Assembly: GCA_021613535.1 (NCBI GenBank)
Contig: CP075493.1
Span: forward strand, 4,278,001-4,342,000
Source of the DNA: Adineta vaga
Taxonomy: Eukaryota; Animalia; Rotifera
Direction of reading: 5' to 3'
Length of the DNA stretch: 64,000 bases
The notes under the pieces were generated by a model. It did not search any database, was not told where the DNA came from, and saw only the letters and a list, made by a program, of their open reading frames with translations. A program made the position numbers and the translations under genes. Positions 43,822 through 64,000 of the stretch are shown here, piece by piece (within the stretch, counting starts at the first letter, position 1; each line of letters opens with the position of its first letter).

Positions 43822-46503
43822 TCATGTTTGTAAAGATGTTTTTTGACGAGCAACTCTTTTGTCAGATTTTCGAAATTTTGACGGTAAAACACGACCAATA
43901 TGAGATATCGGAGAATAACATAGTTTATATATAAGAAAAACTGTCGTAAATAGATCGATGATTGTAAAAATGAATAATAGTGTATGAAAGACAAGTTCTG
44001 TAATACGAACGATTGGTCTTTGATTATTCAAAAGAAAATAAGATTCTTCAAAAAAACTTATTTTCAAGATCGTTCGATCTGATATATATCGTAAGTATTG
44101 TCCATTTTGTTCGAAAATCAATTCATCAGAAAGAGCATCGGTACTCATCGTTGTACCCCAACGTCCATCGATGATGTTATCATCACCTACACGAAGTGGT
44201 TTTGTTTGATTGATAACTTTAATAAGTTTTACAGTGAAGTCAGTAACTAAACCAATCGTTTGATTATCTGTATAGAATAAAGTACATGTATCGAGATGAT
44301 GTAAACGATGGATATTATTTTCTGTACGAGCATCACCATGAAGACAGAAACGAACAGCGCCAAGAAAATATGCACCGATTATATCAAGTTTAATACTCGA
44401 TCGATGTGTTGGTAGAAGAAAGCGAAATGAAAGTGTAGTATTATCTTTTGAAAGGGTACAATTTCGTATTGGTAAGTTAACTGAACGAACATTAACTCTT
44501 GTCCATTGAATAGAAATATCTTTACATAACGGTTGAGCAATGTTAATTAAATCGACAGACATAGTAAAGTCTTGTTCATTGAGCATATCAAATATTGGCC
44601 ATCGTTCGCCGTGTATATCAGCTAATGGAAGTTGTAAAGCATTATCAAATTGAGTATTACGTATGTCACCTTGACATGTAGCAATGTCAAAAGGAATTAT
44701 TTCAATGGGATATAGATTAAGATAAGTTAAGGCAATCCAAAAGAGAATACCAATAAGAACGAGTATAATAACTGATGCTAAACCACCAATCCATCGTTCG
44801 CCAGAACCAATAATATCTGTATGTTTAAAAAGACTTTTTATTTGCTTTCGATGTATTGTCGATGTTGGCCAACGATGTGAACATTGTTTAAGAATAAACA
44901 TAATTAACCAAATAATTACACATATAACACTGATAAGAATAATCCAGAAAAGAGGTGACATTAAAAGACAATATTTGGCTTTATTTTCCATATCAATAGT
45001 CAAGAAATTAATCAATAAATAATCATCAATATTATTAATATCAGGTGAATCCGGATAGGTTGCTATCTGTGTATATGAAGAGACATTTTTAAGGTCAACT
45101 TCACCACTAGCACCAAGTGGACAAAATGCATCGGTCATACATAAACGACAACGAATCGTATCATTACCCGAATTCATTGTATTCGATGGACACACAGTAC
45201 ATGGTCCTAAGGATGTTTCATTTCGAAATGTACCACGTATGCAAGGAAACCATTCGAAATGATATAAAGGTGTATTCAGTATTTCCTGTTGAATTATCGA
45301 ACATGCACCAGGTGGTGATGGAGGAACATAGTAAAGACTACTATCACTATTGAGTAAAAGTAAATTTTGATTTTTTGTTAAGACAAGAAAAATATCTAAC
45401 AAATTCGTATTTGTATTAATATTTAAGAAAACTTGTTGATGATTTGGAAGGACAAAATCAGGATGACGACGTGAATTTTGAAATGTTACATTCGAATACA
45501 CACGTAATTGAGAGTAAGACCATATACTTTGATCATACTTACCAATGACAACAGCAAGTTTACCAGATTCAATCCAAGCTATAGAACGACCAAACTCACT
45601 AATACTATTCGAATCTGTATTCATCAATGGTAGATTTGTATTCATGGAAATCTGCCAAGAATCTTCTTCTGATGGAATCACTTGACAAAAGATTATTTTA
45701 TTTATACTTGGTATTCCAATTGCAATTAAACCGGTCGAACGATCAAGCGAAATTGGTAAATTTGATGGTCGATTGTATTGAATCATTTGCACATTATACG
45801 TACGTTCTGTAAAAATGACATTTCCTCCCGCAACATAGATTTCAGGTTGTAATGCGAAAAGAGTAACACAATAGAATCCAAATGAATCAGACCAAGGAGA
45901 AACCAAATATCCTGTAACAAATGCCCATTGATCAGTAATAACAAATGAACGAAAAAAAATTCGTTCTCTTGTTTGTGAGAGTACTATATCACCAAAAGTA
46001 AAATTTTGTATAATCGTATTATTAACTAAATCATACGAAAGTAGAAATGAATCTGCCATAATATATGCATATTTTTCTTGTGAATCTATTTCAATTTGTA
46101 GATATTGTTGATGACAATTTTGACAAATAATCGTATCAACATAACTTGTATGAAAACAAGTTGTTTGAACAACACTTAAAACAACATCCAATGACGTGGT
46201 ATCTTCAGCAAGTTGAACAAAGCGAATTGTTTCATTATCAATCATAGACATACCTGAAATACTATATATGTAATATTTTTGCCGATCATCAGCGAGATAC
46301 GGATGACATATATTGTATGTACTAGTACTCATCGGCCCAATAAGATATTCAATTAAATAGTATGCATAGATATTGAATGCTCCAACAATGTATTGTTCAT
46401 TCATAAAGATTCGTAAACCATGAGCATCATCATCTGTTTCAAAACTAATTGAAAAAATCATTGGAAGAAATAAAACTGATAGAAAACATCGAAATTGCTC
46501 CAT
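43822..46503 (-). CDS. 893-aa membrane protein: signal peptide, large ectodomain, Cys-rich repeat (ephrin-receptor/TNFR-like), 3 TM segments; intronless
   Basis: CIRGTFRNETSLGPCTVCPSNT..CRLC..FCPLG; hydrophobic stretches near aa 520, 580 and 845. Confidence 0.8.
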   Translation of the reverse strand: MEQFRCFLSVLFLPMIFSISFETDDDAHGLRIFMNEQYIVGAFNIYAYYLIEYLIGPMSTSTYNICHPYLADDRQKYYIYSISGMSMIDNETIRFVQLAEDTTSLDVVLSVVQTTCFHTSYVDTIICQNCHQQYLQIEIDSQEKYAYIMADSFLLSYDLVNNTIIQNFTFGDIVLSQTRERIFFRSFVITDQWAFVTGYLVSPWSDSFGFYCVTLFALQPEIYVAGGNVIFTERTYNVQMIQYNRPSNLPISLDRSTGLIAIGIPSINKIIFCQVIPSEEDSWQISMNTNLPLMNTDSNSISEFGRSIAWIESGKLAVVIGKYDQSIWSYSQLRVYSNVTFQNSRRHPDFVLPNHQQVFLNINTNTNLLDIFLVLTKNQNLLLLNSDSSLYYVPPSPPGACSIIQQEILNTPLYHFEWFPCIRGTFRNETSLGPCTVCPSNTMNSGNDTIRCRLCMTDAFCPLGASGEVDLKNVSSYTQIATYPDSPDINNIDDYLLINFLTIDMENKAKYCLLMSPLFWIILISVICVIIWLIMFILKQCSHRWPTSTIHRKQIKSLFKHTDIIGSGERWIGGLASVIILVLIGILFWIALTYLNLYPIEIIPFDIATCQGDIRNTQFDNALQLPLADIHGERWPIFDMLNEQDFTMSVDLINIAQPLCKDISIQWTRVNVRSVNLPIRNCTLSKDNTTLSFRFLLPTHRSSIKLDIIGAYFLGAVRFCLHGDARTENNIHRLHHLDTCTLFYTDNQTIGLVTDFTVKLIKVINQTKPLRVGDDNIIDGRWGTTMSTDALSDELIFEQNGQYLRYISDRTILKISFFEESYFLLNNQRPIVRITELVFHTLLFIFTIIDLFTTVFLIYKLCYSPISHIGRVLPSKFRKSDKRVARQKTSLQT

Positions 46504-55149: not shown

Positions 55150-56550
55150 ATGTCTTTAAATCAAATAAATCGTTTGATTTCAACCAGTCGACAAAGTTAT
55201 ATTTCATCTGTAAATTCAATACGATCTTTATCAACGGCGAAAGATAGTAAGTAATATCTAATATATGGCCCATATACAAACGGTTAAATGGCTTTGTTTT
55301 TAGTTCCATCATTTCCTATGAAACGAAAATCTCCTCTTCGTCCACCACCCGAATATGCTAAATTACGCAAAGAAGCACCTGTAACGAAAGCAAAAATTTG
55401 GGATGGTAGTTCAGTTTGGTTGGTGTCACGCCATAAAGATGTTGTTAAAGTTCTTACTGATTCATCATTCAGTAAAGTACGTACTCATGAAGGATTTCCT
55501 GAAACGGGACCAGGTGGTAAAGCAGCAGCTACAGCTACTAAACCAACATTCGTCGATATGGATCCTCCTGAACATACTCAACATCGATCTATGGTTGAAA
55601 ATGATTTCTCAATGAAAAATGTTGAATCTTTACGGCCTAAACTTGAAAAAATTGCCAATAATTTAATTGATGAGATGAAAAAGAAAAAACAGCCAGTTGA
55701 TTTACATATTTCATATTCTCTACCTGTACCGACATTCACGATTTATGATATGTTAGGAATTCCGTATGAAGATCATGATTTCTTAGAACGATGTAATGCT
55801 ATTCGTACGAATGGAAGTGCAACATCTGCTGAATCATCAGCTGCTAGTCAAGATCTCATGAATTATCTTGCACGTTTAGTATGTTATTGCTTCGATATCT
55901 TTGATTTTATTTCAATCGTTGAATTTATCTTTTAGGTAGAAAAGAAGAAAAAGAATAAAGGTGGTAATGATATGATTACTCGTCTTTTAAAACAAGTTCA
56001 ACAAGGAAAATTGACTGATGAAGAACTTGTTGCTATGTCATTTCTTCTTTTAGTTGCTGGAAATGCAACAACGGCAAATATGATTACATTAGGTATTTTA
56101 ACATTACTTCAACATCCCAATCAATTAAATGAACTGAAAAAGAATCCATCATTAATTAAAAATGCTGTCGAAGAAATTCTTCGTTATCTAACTGGTTCAC
56201 AATTTGCTACTCGACGAGTTGCAATTCAAAAAGTTCAAATCGGTAATCAACTTATTGAAAAAAATCAAGGTGTCTGGGCGTTGAATGCATCAGCCAATGA
56301 TGATGAAGAAGTTTTCAAGAATCCGACTCAATTTGATATTCATCGTCAGCCAAATCCACATTTAGCTTTTGGTGAAGGTATTCATAGATGTGTTGCTGAA
56401 CATTTAGCACGTGCTGAAATTGAAGTTGCTATCAATACTCTTCTTCATCGTTTACCAAATCTTCAACTTGCTGTACCATTTGATAAAATTGAATATGTTA
56501 CTGATTCTTCACGAGATTTCGGTGTTAATGCATTACCGATCAAATGGTAA
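55150..56550 (+). CDS. CYP55: Cytochrome P450nor (CYP55-type nitric-oxide reductase), 428 aa with mitochondrial presequence; exons 55150-55246, 55304-55878, 55936-56550
   Basis: Close match to recalled fungal P450nor blocks SKVRT..GFPE, KPTFVDMDPPEH..QRSMVE, LPVP, NAIRTNGS, FLLLVAGNAT, HRCxAEHLA (heme Cys), RDxG; both GT-AG introns are phase-consistent. Confidence 0.9.
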
Positions 56551-56845
56551 TTTCAAAATTTGAGATTCAGACAATTTAATTTTTTTTCAATTTAGCTTAT
56601 CTAACTACTAACTATTGACTTTTATTCAACAATAAAAAGATATATCTATTATTTATTACATATAACAACAACTTGAACATGATTTGCAATGTTTATCGTA
56701 AAGAGAAAGCTTATATTTTCTTAATTAAATTTCATACGAGAGTTTAGCTTTATTTTTAATCGAAAAAACAAGATAGAAGAAATCAAGGTAGACAAAATCT
56801 TGAATGAGAAAAAAAAGAATTAGTTTTTGTTCATCTAAATATCGA

Positions 56846-57284
56846 CTAATTCGATGGATGATTCGGTAGTGGTGGATAATTGATTTTGTTTCTAAACAAA
56901 AATCGTTTAGTATTGAATACATTTATAGATTGAAAAGATTCTCTACATACAACTGAGATTGTGTATTTCCAAATCGTTCACCGCCATCCATTCCTAAAGC
57001 ACCGGCACCAATACCAAAACCAACACCACGAATACCAAATTTTCTTGTATAACATTGTTTACAATATACATCTCCATCATGTTCAGCAACGTTGGAAATT
57101 TCTAACATTTTCTTACAAAGTCCTACAGAAATTAAATTTTACATCGATTAAATTAATCAATCATCTTACCACATCGAAAACAAATTTTATGCCACATTTT
57201 GCCTGCGACGGGAATTGATTCTGCATGAAAAGCGGCATGACCACATCGAGGACAATGAGGTGTTTCTGCACTTGTAAATGGCAT
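56846..57284 (-). CDS. Single-LIM cysteine/glycine-rich protein (CRP/MLP family), 3 exons
   Basis: [21 protein letters not shown] followed by [16 protein letters not shown]. Confidence 0.88.
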
Positions 57285-58002
57285 CTTCTCGAACAAATAA
57301 CAATAATAATGCTAATAATAAATTACACTCGATTTTTGTAAAGTAACAGAAACTTTCCACATATATATATATATATAAGTGCGCTACCGAACAATTGATA
57401 TCTGCGTCGTTTTTTTATTTTGAGTACAAAAAGTTAGTAGCAATATATCAACTCTAGTGTAACCAAGCAAATAGAACAAGTATAGAAAGATAAGAGAAGC
57501 ACAATCTGTCAACAGAAAATTGTTTGTATTCAGCGTAGGTTGCTTTCTACTACAAAACATTCCAACAACGAATGTCAATCATTAATAAGACGTAATTTTA
57601 TTTTTTACATATATATATATATATAGGAGGACAGAGAAATATACGTTGGTGCAATCATAATTCAATTGTTAAAGCTAGTTGATAGTGTTGTTGATATTTC
57701 TGTAATTAGTTATTTAGATGATAGATGTATCAAATCTTTTTCCTAATGATAAGGTCATTTCATTGAATTAAAAAAAGAAACGAATCCTACTTTATGACAT
57801 TCCAATATAGATACACGTGAAAACATGTGAATATTGTTCTCATCACGTTTTGATAAAGATTATATATTAAACTAGAGCAACATAAAAAGAATACATTCTT
57901 TTTCGTTTTGAAAGTATTCAGTATTGCAAAAAAAAGGAAATATTCTATTCTCTGTTTAGTACATTTGATATTGTAATTTATTTTGAGAAAATTTATCTGC
58001 AA

Positions 58003-58944: not shown

Positions 58945-60369
58945 CTAAAAGAACCATTCAGTTTTGCTCCATAAAATGCAATAACCAAAAACAATACCAC
59001 TACCGAATATACATGCTGTTGTCAACAGTGAACCAAGAAGTAAATGTGTCGTGCCCGATATTCCTTGTCCACTTGTACATCCACCTGCACATCTTGCTCC
59101 AATAAATAAAAGAAATCCTCCGAGAACACTAGCTAGAACGTTTGTTCCATTTTCTGGTCCTAACGGTATAGTATGAGATAGAGTCGATGATAAAGCACTA
59201 CCACCGATAGCAGCTACACCAAAGAGAAAGATTGTATAATTTTCGAGTCCAGAACTTAAAGAACTCAATGATGGTAAGGCTCGTCCAATGGATTTAATTC
59301 GACATACTTGAGCAGCTAATACAGAAAATGCGGATGATGCTCCTAAAGTCATTTCCAAAAGAAGTATAAAGAATAATTGTAGTAGACCAACACCTGCACC
59401 ACAAAGAGATGGTGGCCAAGCAGCCATACGAAAGACGGATCCAATCATACTGTCTGGATTCATAAAGCTTCTGTCTCGAAAATAATAATCTAAATCTGAT
59501 CTCCAAGGTACGAAGAATTCCAAGCCAATAGCTGCACCAAGGAAAACAAGACCAAATATTGAGTGAAGAACAACACTTGGAGTATGTAATATATCAGAAA
59601 GACGACGAAATACAGGTGATGTGGATGGTAATCTTTCTTTTGTGATACGATCATGAATTACAATATAATAGAAGAAAGTGCCTAAAAGTGCACCCAGACA
59701 AGTAAAGAGTGAATTAAAGATACCGGAACCTCTAGAAGCAAAAAATATGTAGAAAATCGATGTTCAATCTTAGGGAAAGATCATCAATATTTACACTTGA
59801 ACAAATATTGTTCCAGGACAACTACCACAGATGACCATTCCTAAACCAATTAGTGAACCTCCAGCAATATAATGAATAACTACAAAAGGAAATTCAGCAT
59901 ATCAACAAAAGTTTTAGACAAGTTTCACTTACTTCCTCGTCGACAATTGTATTCAATATCATCAACAAGAACTTTTCCATAAAGACTTTTACGAACAAGT
60001 TCAAGTATTGCAACGCTTAACATTGATACGCCAACAGCAGCAAGAAACATTTTCAGCATAACAAAACGTTGAAAAACCATTTGTTTACGAATCGTTGGTG
60101 TTAGAAAGACAGTTGCTTTATTCATTAGGAAGCCAAATAAAACTCCAAGAATGATTACACTTAGAACAGTACGAATTATCTTCACCATATTTTTATTTTT
60201 AGATTGACCTTGAGTACTAACTGGATGCTCAACCATTTTTGTTTTACTCGTCTCCCTAACAAATCAAAAAAAAAACAAACAAATAGTTCAAGTTTAATTA
60301 AAATCCAACTGATGCTAAATCTTACCCTAACTTTTTTTGTTCTGCTGGTAACATTGAATCGTTTTCCAT
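58945..60369 (-). CDS. YeeE/YedE (TsuA-like) sulfur-compound transporter, copy 1, 4 exons
   Basis: Polytopic membrane protein with GMVICGSCPGT and GARCAGGCTSGQGISG motifs; ATG 60369 is spliced in phase to the 59925..60236 exon. Confidence 0.85.
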
Positions 60370-61183
60370 TTTGATCACAATTTCAACTGTGATATATTCT
60401 ATAAGTTATTTGCCAATCTTACGTTGTAATATCGTTTACGATAAAAAAATCGATAATGATTGAAAGAGAGAAAAAAATCGTTCGTATAAATCTGAAAGGA
60501 TGAATATACTTGTACAGGTAGGAAGAACGAAGGATAAAATAATAATAATATCGTATTTGAAAATAATAGTTCTTAGCCTTACCTGGATACGTTTGCATAA
60601 GATAAACTTGATTTGATCATTCTTAGAGGACGTTTTTATAATTTCATTAAAGAAAAGAAAATCTGTTATGTCAATGGAAAATAACAAGTTTTATTTTTGA
60701 ATATAAGCATGTTGTTGCTACACAAGAAAACATTCACTAAATTGCGACACATTTCATATGAAAGCAAGGTGAATTTGATATTTTATCTGATGCAACGCCA
60801 TTCGTGTAAACACATATTAATAGATACTTATCAAATACACATTTGGCAAAGAATCAGCGAACGACGTAAATAAATTAATTATAGCAGTTGGCAATATATT
60901 CTAGTTTTCTTTTGCTTTTTTAGAAATTAGAACTATTGATATTGAAATTATATACCAATAGGAAACAATTACGACGAAATATGCACGACTATTTTGATTT
61001 TTCTCATAGAATATGCACTGATATTTGATTCTATTTTCAAGATCATGATACTCTTGTGATAAATAAATTGAAAGTGCACACAAATTTGAAATACAATATC
61101 CTTAGATATAGATTGAAGGTGAATATATTATAATAAATGTCAATCGTTAGAAAAAAAAGCGTTCTGTCTATTTGCATATGATT

Positions 61184-62580
61184 TTAAAACAACCATTCAT
61201 TTTTACTCAGCGAAAAAGAGAAAGCAAAAATAATACCACTACCAAATATACATGCTGTTGTCAAAAATGAACCGACAAGAAGATGTGTTGTACCTGATAT
61301 TCCTTGTCCACTTGTACATCCACCGGCACAACGTGCACCAACAAGCAGAAGAAATCCTCCGAGAATACTAGAAAGAATATTTGTTCCATTTTCTGGTCCT
61401 AATGGTAAAGTATCAGATAGAATCGATGATAAAGCACTACCACCAACAGCAGCCAAAGCAAATAAAAGAGCTGTATAGTTTTTTAATCCATAGGTTAAAC
61501 CAACCAATGATGGTATCTTTTGACCAATAATCTTAATACGACATAATTGTGCAGCTAATACAGAAAATGCAGATGATGCTCCTAATGATTTTTCAAGGCA
61601 AAGTATGAAGAAGAATTGAAGAAGACCAACACCTGCACCGCAAAGCGATGGTGGCCATGCTGCCATACGAAAGACAGATCCGATCATTCTTTGTGGATTC
61701 AAATTACTTCGGATTTGAAAATAATAATCTAAATCTGATCTCCAAGGTACTAAGAATTCTAAACCAATAGCTGCACCAAGAAATAAAAGACCAAGTATCA
61801 AATGAACAATAATACTTGGCGTATGTAATAAATCAGAAATACGACGCAGAACGAATGATGTGGATGGTAATTTTTCTGTGGAGACACGTTCATGAATAAT
61901 ACCGTAATAAAAATAAGTACCTAGAAGACCACCTAAACATGTGAAGAGTGAATTCACGATACCAGAACCCCTACAAAATACAAGAACACGAGAATATTAT
62001 TGTTCATACGATGATCTAGCTACCTACACTTGAATATATACTGTTCCTGGACAACTACCACAGATGACCATTCCTAGGCCAATAAGCGAACCTCCAACGA
62101 TATAATGTACAACTACAAAATAGAATATGAGTTAGTTGAGTACGTTTTTGTTCTCTAGCAAGAAAGCTTTGACTTACAATTTCGTCGACTATTGTGTTCG
62201 ATATACCCATTGATAATTTTTCCATATAAAACTTTACGAAAAAGCTCCAGTAACGCAACACTCAACATTGACATTCCCACAGCAGCGAGAAACATTTTTA
62301 ACATAGCAAAACGTTGAAATAACATTTGTTTACGAATTGTCGGTGCCACAAAGACTGTTCCTTTATTTATTAAAAATCCGAATACAAGACCAAAGATAAT
62401 TGAACATAGAATAGTAAAAATATTCATCAATATGCTTATATTATTGGAATGACCATGTGCAGTGACTGGAGTGTTTTTCTTACTATTTTAAAAGTAGAAT
62501 TAGTTTTTCTAAAAAAAATAAACTTACTCTAAATTCGTCTGTTGTGATGATAACATCGGATCATTTTCTTTATTAGCCAT
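61184..62580 (-). CDS. YeeE/YedE (TsuA-like) sulfur-compound transporter, copy 2, 4 exons
   Basis: Tandem paralog with the same motifs and intron positions; ATG 62580. Confidence 0.85.
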
Positions 62581-63787
62581 TTGATCAGATTTAATATATT
62601 CTTTTTGTTGTTTATCAGTTTCAATTTTCAATATCACCCATCAAAACAATTTGTTAGCGCTAAAAAGAAAGAAAATAATATTTTCTTATTTATTACGAAG
62701 TATAAATTATACGTCATGATGACAAGGTATTTTTTGTTCTATCTGATGTAATGCTATTGGTTACAAATAAATATTTATAAGTAATGAGAGGTGTGTGTAA
62801 AAACAGAACAAAATTGGGTACTTAACCTCATATATATTTTGCTGAAAGAAAGAATATTTTTCTAGATTATAATGATAATGAATGCTGGGTTCAAAGATAT
62901 ATGCTGAATAGATTTTCTCAAGTGTTCTTTATAGTAAATAATTATCATCATGTATGCATTAGGATATACTATGCTCAGAAGAAAGAGAAAAATAATATGA
63001 TGGCGTTAGTTGCTATAGTGAATATTTGTCACACCCTCAAGGATATTGACAGAAAAGTCACATGAAAATAGAAAAAAAAGCATTTTCGTTTTAAGAACAA
63101 AAAACATCCATTAAAAGTATTATTCATGTTTTGATATATAAGTACTTATATGTATAAATACAACAGCTAAACGTTTTCTTTTGACAGCAACTTTTTTTTT
63201 ATCCTTAAGTTTCCATTAAAATGAGAAAAAGTACATTCGATATCAAAAATACAAGTAAAAGAAAAATAAGGATTTATTATAAATTTCAAAAATTAACAGA
63301 TGTCTAGATATTTTTTTTAAATTAAATTCTATCATTTAAAGAATAACGTTAATTTTATTCAAGTAAGTTTCGATCTGAAAAAAATACGACAGATCTGCTA
63401 GCGTCATTTCACATTACTCGAAGGGGTTCCCGTTGAAATTTTTTTTTCTTCTGATGCAATGTAGGTGATTTATGCTAGAGAAGATAAGAAATTGTCCTAT
63501 GTCGTTTTTTTTCTTTCTCATTGTCGACATCGACCAAAGACAAATGGTAAACTATATTTTACTGCATTATTCAATTGTTTTACAATTTTAAAAACTTCAT
63601 ATCTAAATTCATAGAGCTCGCGTAACTATCATAATTTTACTTAAATATATGAATAATAATCACAAGATAGAAAGATATCTTTTGGATAAATAAAAAAGAA
63701 ACAAATGAAGCGTAGCAATATATGACATATAATATGGATAGAAAATATATCTTTTTCTCTCTTATTTGAGATTTTATACTTTAGATA

Positions 63788-63812
63788 TTCTATTCTATTC
63801 TATTCTATTCTA
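63788..63812 (+). repeat. (TTCTA)5 microsatellite
   Basis: Read directly from the sequence. Confidence 0.85.
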
Positions 63813-63828
63813 TTAATCATTAAAATCA

Positions 63829-64000
63829 ATGTCGAAACATTTATTTAGACAGGTATTATTCAAAGAGATATATTTGTATATATATATATATATTAATCGA
63901 ATAAATTCTTATTACAGTTCTTCGAACATGAATCATCAACATATACATATTTATTGGCTGATTTAACAACAAAAGAAGCATTAGTTATTGATCCTGTTGT
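63829..64000 (+). CDS. ETHE1: Persulfide dioxygenase ETHE1 (5' part, truncated by the window end; intron 63853-63917)
   Basis: Spliced MSKHLFRQ|FFEHESSTYTYLLADLTTKEALVIDPV matches the conserved ETHE1/PDO N-terminus (FRQLFE..SxTYTYLL.D....EA..IDPV). Confidence 0.82.

Follow-up and report, generated by a model that had tools for sequence, protein, structure and literature searches.

Cytochrome P450 nitric-oxide reductase (P450nor, family CYP55) has hitherto been assigned to fungi and to a small number of green algae, and the nitrous oxide (N2O) released by invertebrates is generally ascribed to their microbes. Does the bdelloid rotifer Adineta vaga possess a P450nor gene of its own, and if so, from where did it come and what might it do? 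The question is raised by a 64-kb window of A. vaga chromosome 1 (contig 1, 4.278-4.342 Mb), in which a sequence-only reading had proposed a spliced, horizontally acquired and domesticated CYP55 gene. That stretch was re-read base by base, and coordinates are given here as positions in the window. We judge it probable that the locus holds an integrated, expressed, selected and horizontally acquired CYP55 (P450nor) gene with a predicted role in the reduction of nitric oxide (NO).

Gene model and transcription

The following features were identified:

55150-55246, plus strand: exon 1, 97 nt, ATG at 55150, ends in phase 1; 32 residues and one base (MSLNQINRLISTSRQSYISSVNSIRSLSTAKD)
55247-55303, plus strand: intron 1, 57 nt, phase 1, GTAAGT..TAG
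55304-55878, plus strand: exon 2, N-terminal half of the P450 fold; K62, R64, E71, G73, G75, D88 and R174 (Fusarium numbering)
55879-55935, plus strand: intron 2, 57 nt, phase 0, GTATGT..TAG
55936-56550, plus strand: exon 3, C-terminal half; I-helix AGNAT, S286, R291, R292, the heme-ligand Cys (FGEGIHRCVAEH), R392, D393 and a TAA stop
56551-56745, plus strand: 3' untranslated region, with RNA contigs to 56601 (run X1) and 56745 (run X6) and AATAAA at 56631-56636

The spliced model of 428 amino acids with two 57-nt introns proposed by the sequence-only reading proved exact at both junctions, 55246/55304 and 55878/55936. The coding sequence of 1287 nt specifies a product which is the same in sequence as the database protein P0270, "hypothetical protein I4U23_001377 [Adineta vaga]" (428 aa). 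Pfam analysis gave a single p450 domain, exon 3 alone matching at E 1e-25. A membrane anchor and a fused reductase are absent, and the N-terminus is polar and basic, not hydrophobic.

Exactly two P450nor copies were found in the A. vaga genome (100.8-Mb assembly, six contigs). The second lies at 0.62 Mb on contig 6, shares 70-73% identity with the window copy and has the same two intron positions. Its first exon is of only ten bases (M-T-D) and lacks the N-terminal extension.

With respect to transcription, both joins were present in RNA contigs. Intron 2 was skipped (55878 to 55936) in a 1220-nt contig of the RNA-like run X1 and in a 755-nt contig of run X3 from another study. Intron 1 was skipped (55246 to 55304) in an X1 RNA contig covering 55184-55246, and the loose ends at 55304 in two further contigs are the last ten bases of exon 1. 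Contigs of the DNA run X11 read through both introns, intron 2 lying inside a contig of 1231 nt. In two plant-associated metatranscriptomes, X9 and X10, 8-9% of the sampled words of the gene were found in each, a hint that bdelloids express the P450nor gene in natural samples.

A LIM-domain gene on the minus strand (56716-57296) converges on the P450nor gene. Its RNA contigs stop near 56716 with a loose run of T, equivalent to a minus-strand poly(A) tail, and the 3' ends of the P450nor transcript (RNA contig to 56745) and the LIM gene overlap by approximately 30 nt.

Assignment to the CYP55 family

Structure searches were run for each exon separately, and whole-protein comparisons were made with the database record P0270. 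The best solved-structure match of each exon was Fusarium oxysporum CYP55A1 (1ROM, 1EHE, 1CL6, 1XQD, 1ULW), whose soluble single-domain architecture is also that of the rotifer protein. Exon 2 gave 207 bits (E 1e-60) against the Fusarium structures and 128 bits against the best other P450, and exon 3 gave 185 bits (E 1e-53) and 166 bits, respectively; with these E values the match to P450nor is far beyond chance. Membership of a CYP family is by rule assigned at more than 40% amino-acid identity to named members. P0270 shares 52% identity with P0001, a sequence of the CYP55 clade. For the rotifer query P0271 the figures are 49-57% against named fungal CYP55A proteins and 52% against the CYP55 of Chlamydomonas reinhardtii (Cre01.g007950; P0305). 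Taken together, Fusarium P450nor and the Chlamydomonas protein show 52-57% identity with the rotifer protein. Bacterial relatives gave 32-44% identity over exon 2.

In a maximum-likelihood tree of 59 sequences (LG+C20+F+G4), the rotifer proteins and CYP55 formed a clade excluding the bacterial P450s with support of 100/100, the branch measuring 0.51 changes per site. The sequence-only reading, which had named CYP55 rather than the related CYP105 as the family and had listed K62, R64, E71, D88, R174, T243, S286 and D393 as retained, was borne out on both points. HMMER alignments with PDB numbering placed each of these residues opposite an identical residue of Fusarium CYP55A1, as they did R292, C352 and R392, with T243 standing in the same N-A-T triplet. 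The heme-thiolate motif F-G-x-G-x-H-x-C (FGEGIHRCVAEH) aligns with Fusarium C352. The window protein thus contains all residues of the NAD(P)H pocket (K62, R64, R174, K/R291, R292 and R392) together with the E71/D88 salt-bridge network.

The same pattern was observed across the rotifers. In a 48-row alignment, K62, R64, E71, D88, R174, N241-A242-T243, S286, R291, R292, C352 and D393 were found in every full-length rotifer sequence, and the same residue set was found in both halves of the contig-6 copy; R392 was kept throughout these sequences except for a His in P0271. The fifteen nearest bacterial P450s lacked most of the residues diagnostic of CYP55. The I-helix motif AGNAT was present in all 14 full-length rotifer sequences and the contig-6 copy, and H-E-T in 10 of the 15 bacterial neighbours, while the proton-delivery residues S286 and D393 were present in all aligned rotifer and CYP55 sequences but in none of the bacterial ones.

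The rotifer protein differs from Fusarium CYP55A1 in its animal host, in its position outside the fungal-algal crown, in having Arg rather than Lys at position 291, and in having Gly at both 73 and 75. The Gly pair was found in all rotifer sequences and accounts for the top PDB match of exon 2 being 1ULW, an engineered S73G/S75G Fusarium variant. This variant shows improved use of NADPH, and Gly73/Gly75 predict that the rotifer enzyme could use both NADH and NADPH.

Could the protein instead be a CYP105-like monooxygenase, dependent on a redox partner for the hydroxylation of small molecules, that resembles P450nor only at the level of the wider family? Actinobacterial CYP105-type P450s (P450 SU-1/Vdh 2ZBX, MoxA 2Z36) share the fold, are the nearest bacterial relatives and score 120-166 bits against the exons, and CYP55 is considered to descend from CYP105 stock (PMC6161760). 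Language-model and structure searches of the ESM Atlas likewise yielded actinobacterial P450 clusters (e.g., pentalenic acid synthase) as look-alikes, although these were generic clusters only and were set aside as a clue to family. The CYP105-type enzymes are, however, O2-activating monooxygenases with an acid-alcohol pair (E/D-T) in the I-helix, the acid being Glu in most of the bacterial neighbours sampled. In the rotifer protein an Ala-Thr stands in its place, as in P450nor. The NADH-binding cluster and the proton-relay residues, absent from the bacterial neighbours, are present in the rotifer proteins, and the 100/100 branch of 0.51 separates the two groups. A CYP105-like monooxygenase is therefore very improbable, and the protein is assigned to CYP55.

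Integration into the rotifer genome and distribution

The gene sits 4.3 Mb into a chromosome-scale contig of 18.1 Mb (18,146,847 bp). In X11, an independent DNA run of 2013, depth over the gene was 119-131, equal to the summed depths of the flanking haplotype contigs (63+63 and 68+67), and DNA contigs overlapped from the gene into both flanks. The GC content at third codon positions (GC3) was 0.13-0.17 in the exons compared with 0.12-0.20 in neighbouring genes. A separate assembly of A. ricciae has the same gene order, namely F-box(-like), p450, LIM, a 144-aa gene, Sulf_transp and Lactamase_B. The gene is thus linked to its flanking animal genes by the chromosome-scale contig, by depth equal to that of the flanks and by synteny.

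Homologues were found in A. ricciae, four Rotaria species, Didymodactylos carnosus and several further assemblies. The rotifer sequences were monophyletic in the maximum-likelihood tree (100/98), and with Didymodactylos added (100/100); in the latter tree the rotifer lineages part at a basal polytomy, which gave no timing for the duplication behind the two A. vaga copies. Among the best 120 hits of each database search there was no animal other than bdelloids; after the bdelloids the named matches were all fungi or green algae, and the rest were metagenome or transcriptome entries.

These data bear on whether the gene lies outside the animal genome, as fungal or algal contamination or as a product of misassembly. 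The nearest non-rotifer relatives are indeed fungal, algal and metagenomic, and the introns stand at fungal and algal positions. The sequence-only reading had used the introns as an argument against contamination; its conclusion that the gene is no contaminant stands, but introns alone do not exclude a eukaryotic one. What decides the matter is the position deep inside the contig, the depth equal to that of diploid flanks with contigs overlapping both, the host-like GC3, the same neighbours in A. ricciae and the occurrence of homologues in six named bdelloid species as one clade. On the strength of depth, synteny and GC3, contamination and misassembly are excluded for practical purposes, and a residence of the gene in the animal genome is taken as established.

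The two A. vaga copies cannot be called ohnologues. A tblastx comparison of the window with 36 kb around the contig-6 copy matched only the gene itself, two flanking genes had no partner there, and A. vaga chromosome 1 is homoeologous to chromosome 4, not 6 (PMC8494291).

The ratio of nonsynonymous to synonymous substitution rates (dN/dS) against A. ricciae was 0.08 for exon 2 and 0.125 for exon 3, and the catalytic exons are under strong purifying selection between these two species. Between the two A. vaga paralogues dN/dS was 0.31-0.35. Seven coding-sequence variants were present in DNA run X11, four of them synonymous.

Introns and origin of the gene

The rotifer clade was sister to all sampled fungal, green-algal and metagenomic CYP55 sequences (100/99). 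An approximately unbiased (AU) test rejected a placement of the rotifers nearer to fungi than to the Volvox/MMETSP pair (p 0.0002), the group having been defined after the tree had been seen; on this post hoc test a fungal donor was rejected. No sampled lineage can be named as the donor.

Introns were mapped in seven non-rotifer CYP55 genes. Intron 1 shares its alignment column and phase with introns of Myrmecia, Collybia, Quaeritorhiza and Gaertneriomyces, and its position and phase with the contig-6 copy and R. sordida. Intron 2 shares column and phase with Chlamydomonas, Volvox and Myrmecia, and position and phase with the contig-6 copy, A. ricciae and R. sordida. The Chlamydomonas gene, which has ten introns compared with two in the rotifers, has one of them at exactly the site of rotifer intron 2 and another, in phase 1, at a distance of two codons from rotifer intron 1. 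With 15 known intron sites among approximately 1185 possible, the probability of both matching by chance is approximately 1.6e-4, or 1.6e-2 if a tenfold site bias is allowed for. Because both sites coincide with algal or fungal CYP55 introns, a eukaryotic, intron-bearing donor is most likely. The sequence-only reading had taken the introns as host-style additions; this did not hold, as their sizes are host-like yet their positions and phases are common to algal and fungal genes. The R. sordida counterparts measure 795 and 1274 nt, and most likely the two introns are survivors of those of the donor which would later have shrunk to host size in A. vaga.

Horizontal acquisition and domestication of the gene, also claimed from the sequence, agree with its non-metazoan nearest relatives, its linkage, host-like composition and equal depth, and its spliced transcription. 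Entry into bdelloids most likely preceded the split of Adinetidae, Philodinidae and Philodinavidae. Vertical inheritance from an early eukaryotic ancestor, with loss in nearly all other animals, would also place the rotifer clade outside the sampled fungal and algal CYP55 sequences and would preserve ancestral intron positions. Such a history would require very many independent losses, given that the best 120 hits of each search included no non-bdelloid animal and that the RefSeq survey of Higgins et al. 2018 (PMC6161760) recovered p450nor from no organisms but fungi and three green algae. Bdelloids, moreover, are rich in acquired genes: A. vaga has 2679 transfer candidates, 8.3% of its genes, among which oxidoreduction and 'response to nitrosative stress' are over-represented (PMC8494291). 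We regard vertical descent as highly unlikely and retain horizontal transfer. P450nor fits the published pattern of bdelloid transferred genes (PMC8494291), differing from others in that its donor was apparently a eukaryote and its donor introns were retained.

First exon as a putative mitochondrial presequence

Exon 1 encodes four K/R residues with a charge of +4, a sole acidic residue at its very end, and 11 S/T. It contains an R-S-L|S-T motif, which in A. ricciae reads R-T-L|S-T. The orthologous A. ricciae exon (L009, from 4647) is unannotated; it is identical at 22 of 32 residues with an intact splice donor and a dN/dS of 0.31. Basic extensions of a similar kind are found ahead of the same intron in Collybia, Quaeritorhiza and Volvox. 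In Rotaria the N-terminus is acidic, and in the contig-6 type it consists of four residues.

On balance we lean towards exon 1 being a mitochondrial targeting sequence, a reading which draws on composition, the R-x-L|S motif and conservation. Weighing against it, the test for an amphipathic helix was not significant, the hydrophobic moment of exon 1 being no higher than that of shuffled sequences. The window copy would probably be directed to mitochondria by its basic, Ser-rich first exon, and the contig-6 copy, with a first exon of three codons, would probably be cytosolic.

Predicted function and nitric oxide metabolism

In the proposed mechanism, NO would bind the ferric heme, NAD(P)H would bind directly in the distal pocket and deliver a hydride without a redox partner, and a second NO would react to give N2O and water. 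The animal may in this way make N2O with its own enzyme. The favoured role would be removal of NO, especially at O2 levels too low for flavohemoglobins, so that P450nor would complement these O2-dependent enzymes. Flavohemoglobin NO dioxygenases (Hmp/Yhb1 type) are likewise NO-removing and of microbial type, and occur in the same A. vaga genome. They differ from P450nor in having an unrelated fold, in needing O2 and in yielding nitrate rather than N2O; in fungi, flavohemoglobin and p450nor co-occur (PMC6161760). In six-frame searches of the A. vaga genome the NO-inducible flavohemoprotein model matched at least five flavohemoglobin-like genes with 310-320 bits, and one that was checked has globin and NAD-binding domains. 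A nitrate reductase was also found:

Contig 4, 1,539,074-1,546,539 (L010-L012): three flavohemoglobin-like genes, full-length, intronless, in tandem
Contig 3, 18,777,743-18,778,876: flavohemoglobin-like gene, full-length, intronless
Contig 1, 10,334,794-10,335,929: flavohemoglobin-like gene, match in two adjacent pieces
Contig 6, ~12.546 Mb (L021:694-3117): nitrate reductase, intronless open reading frame (ORF) of 807 aa

The 807-aa ORF has the complete domain order of a eukaryotic assimilatory nitrate reductase (Oxidored_molyb, Mo-co_dimer, Cyt-b5, FAD_binding_6 and NAD_binding_1).

A number of points weigh against this reading. Catalytic activity, cofactor use, localisation and physiological role are predictions, and activity is read from sequence for every rotifer protein. 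The window copy lies on a long stem of 0.34-0.41 changes per site, which could reflect relaxed rather than adaptive change. A Didymodactylos prediction (P0304, 284 aa) lacks the N-terminus and approximately 25 residues including the I-helix AGNAT, a gap due either to a mis-predicted exon or to a damaged copy. The flavohemoglobin-like genes could make P450nor redundant for detoxification in air, and for fungi a possible function of P450nor in secondary metabolism has been argued (Higgins et al. 2018, PMC6161760). As for a source of NO, six-frame genome searches, which cannot prove absence, found no NirK above cut-off, no oxygenase domain of nitric-oxide synthase and no siroheme nitrite reductase (PF01077). 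In view of these negative searches, NO would need an outside origin or would have to be formed by a non-dedicated reduction of nitrite.

The truncated P0304 and the moderate dN/dS between the A. vaga copies are what could be expected of a transcribed relic that yields no working enzyme. Yet reading frames are intact in both A. vaga copies and in the full-length Adineta and Rotaria predictions, all catalytic residues are kept except for the His replacing R392 in P0271, and the low dN/dS against the A. ricciae orthologue and the four synonymous variants of seven also speak for constraint. A relic is thus only barely credible, and a functional enzyme remains our preferred reading.

A genuine CYP55 could also have a main role other than NO removal, carrying out a biosynthetic reaction (of nitration type or in the formation of a secondary metabolite) on NO or another substrate, with N2O a by-product at most. 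Such a role has been proposed for fungi from the CYP105 ancestry, the co-occurrence of flavohemoglobin and biosynthetic neighbours (PMC6161760). The rotifer too has several flavohemoglobin-like genes, and in Colletotrichum p450nor adjoins or is fused to a methyltransferase. Biosynthetic neighbours are, however, lacking at either rotifer locus, the genes present being F-box, LIM and sulfur-transport genes in the window and a TPR protein on contig 6, and strong constraint has preserved the complete set of residues with which the characterised NO reductase binds NADH and relays protons. A mainly biosynthetic role is accordingly improbable, and removal of NO is favoured.

It is conceivable, although we consider it rather unlikely, that the animal encodes a denitrification-like route built up from horizontally acquired genes. 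Nitrate reductase would supply nitrite, side-activities of molybdoenzymes or the hypoxic respiratory chain would convert nitrite to NO, and the mitochondrial and cytosolic P450nor would reduce NO to N2O. If this were true, bdelloids would be intrinsic N2O producers, and the route would provide a sink for NO, or even for electrons, in hypoxia or rehydration when flavohemoglobins cannot work.

Significance and comparison with known systems

The CYP55 family with its chemistry, and massive gene transfer into bdelloids, were already known. New are the host lineage, the retained donor introns and the pairing of copies with and without the putative presequence. In a full-text search of the literature library used, no paper was found that connects rotifers with P450nor, CYP55 or nitric-oxide reductase. 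A precedent for the function is Chlamydomonas CYP55, which is reported to reduce NO to N2O in the dark and to occur in the mitochondrial proteome (PMC7412212). In that alga NirK is a mitochondrial source of NO, whereas no NirK was found in the six-frame search of A. vaga.

An expressed and conserved animal P450nor pair permits a direct test of whether an animal cell turns NO into N2O, in a genome which it shares with a foreign-type nitrate reductase and flavohemoglobins. It also offers a clean case of eukaryote-to-eukaryote transfer with surviving donor introns, of relevance to the way in which foreign genes acquire function in bdelloids. Should the enzyme be inactive or redundant, it would simply join the many foreign genes already listed for bdelloids.

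Neighbouring genes and CYP55 fusions

Some CYP55 sequences are fused to, or lie beside, other domains. The 979-aa protein P0004 has an N-terminal CYP55 domain, and Colletotrichum has a methyltransferase/NvfJ_N gene that is either a neighbour of p450nor or a fusion partner (P0218, 718 aa, Colletotrichum costaricense; L015:3193-3638). In Gaertneriomyces sp. (L019:1-395) the neighbour of p450nor encodes 777 aa with multicopper-oxidase and alternative-oxidase domains, possibly a nitrite-reductase-like fusion.

Within the window, at a distance of 2.4-8 kb on the downstream side of P450nor (58945-64000), there are two sulfur-transport genes of the YeeE/YedE type and an ETHE1-like lactamase_B gene. 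In A. ricciae (L009:8360-13005) one sulfur-transport gene and the lactamase_B gene follow P450nor with the order kept. Cytochrome oxidase is poisoned by both NO and sulfide, and for this reason the neighbourhood of P450nor and the sulfur genes may not be accidental. Upstream, on the minus strand (43822-46503), there is an intronless 893-aa ORF with no Pfam match. More than 50 matches to its family are distributed over all six contigs, and stop codons occur in several of the copies.

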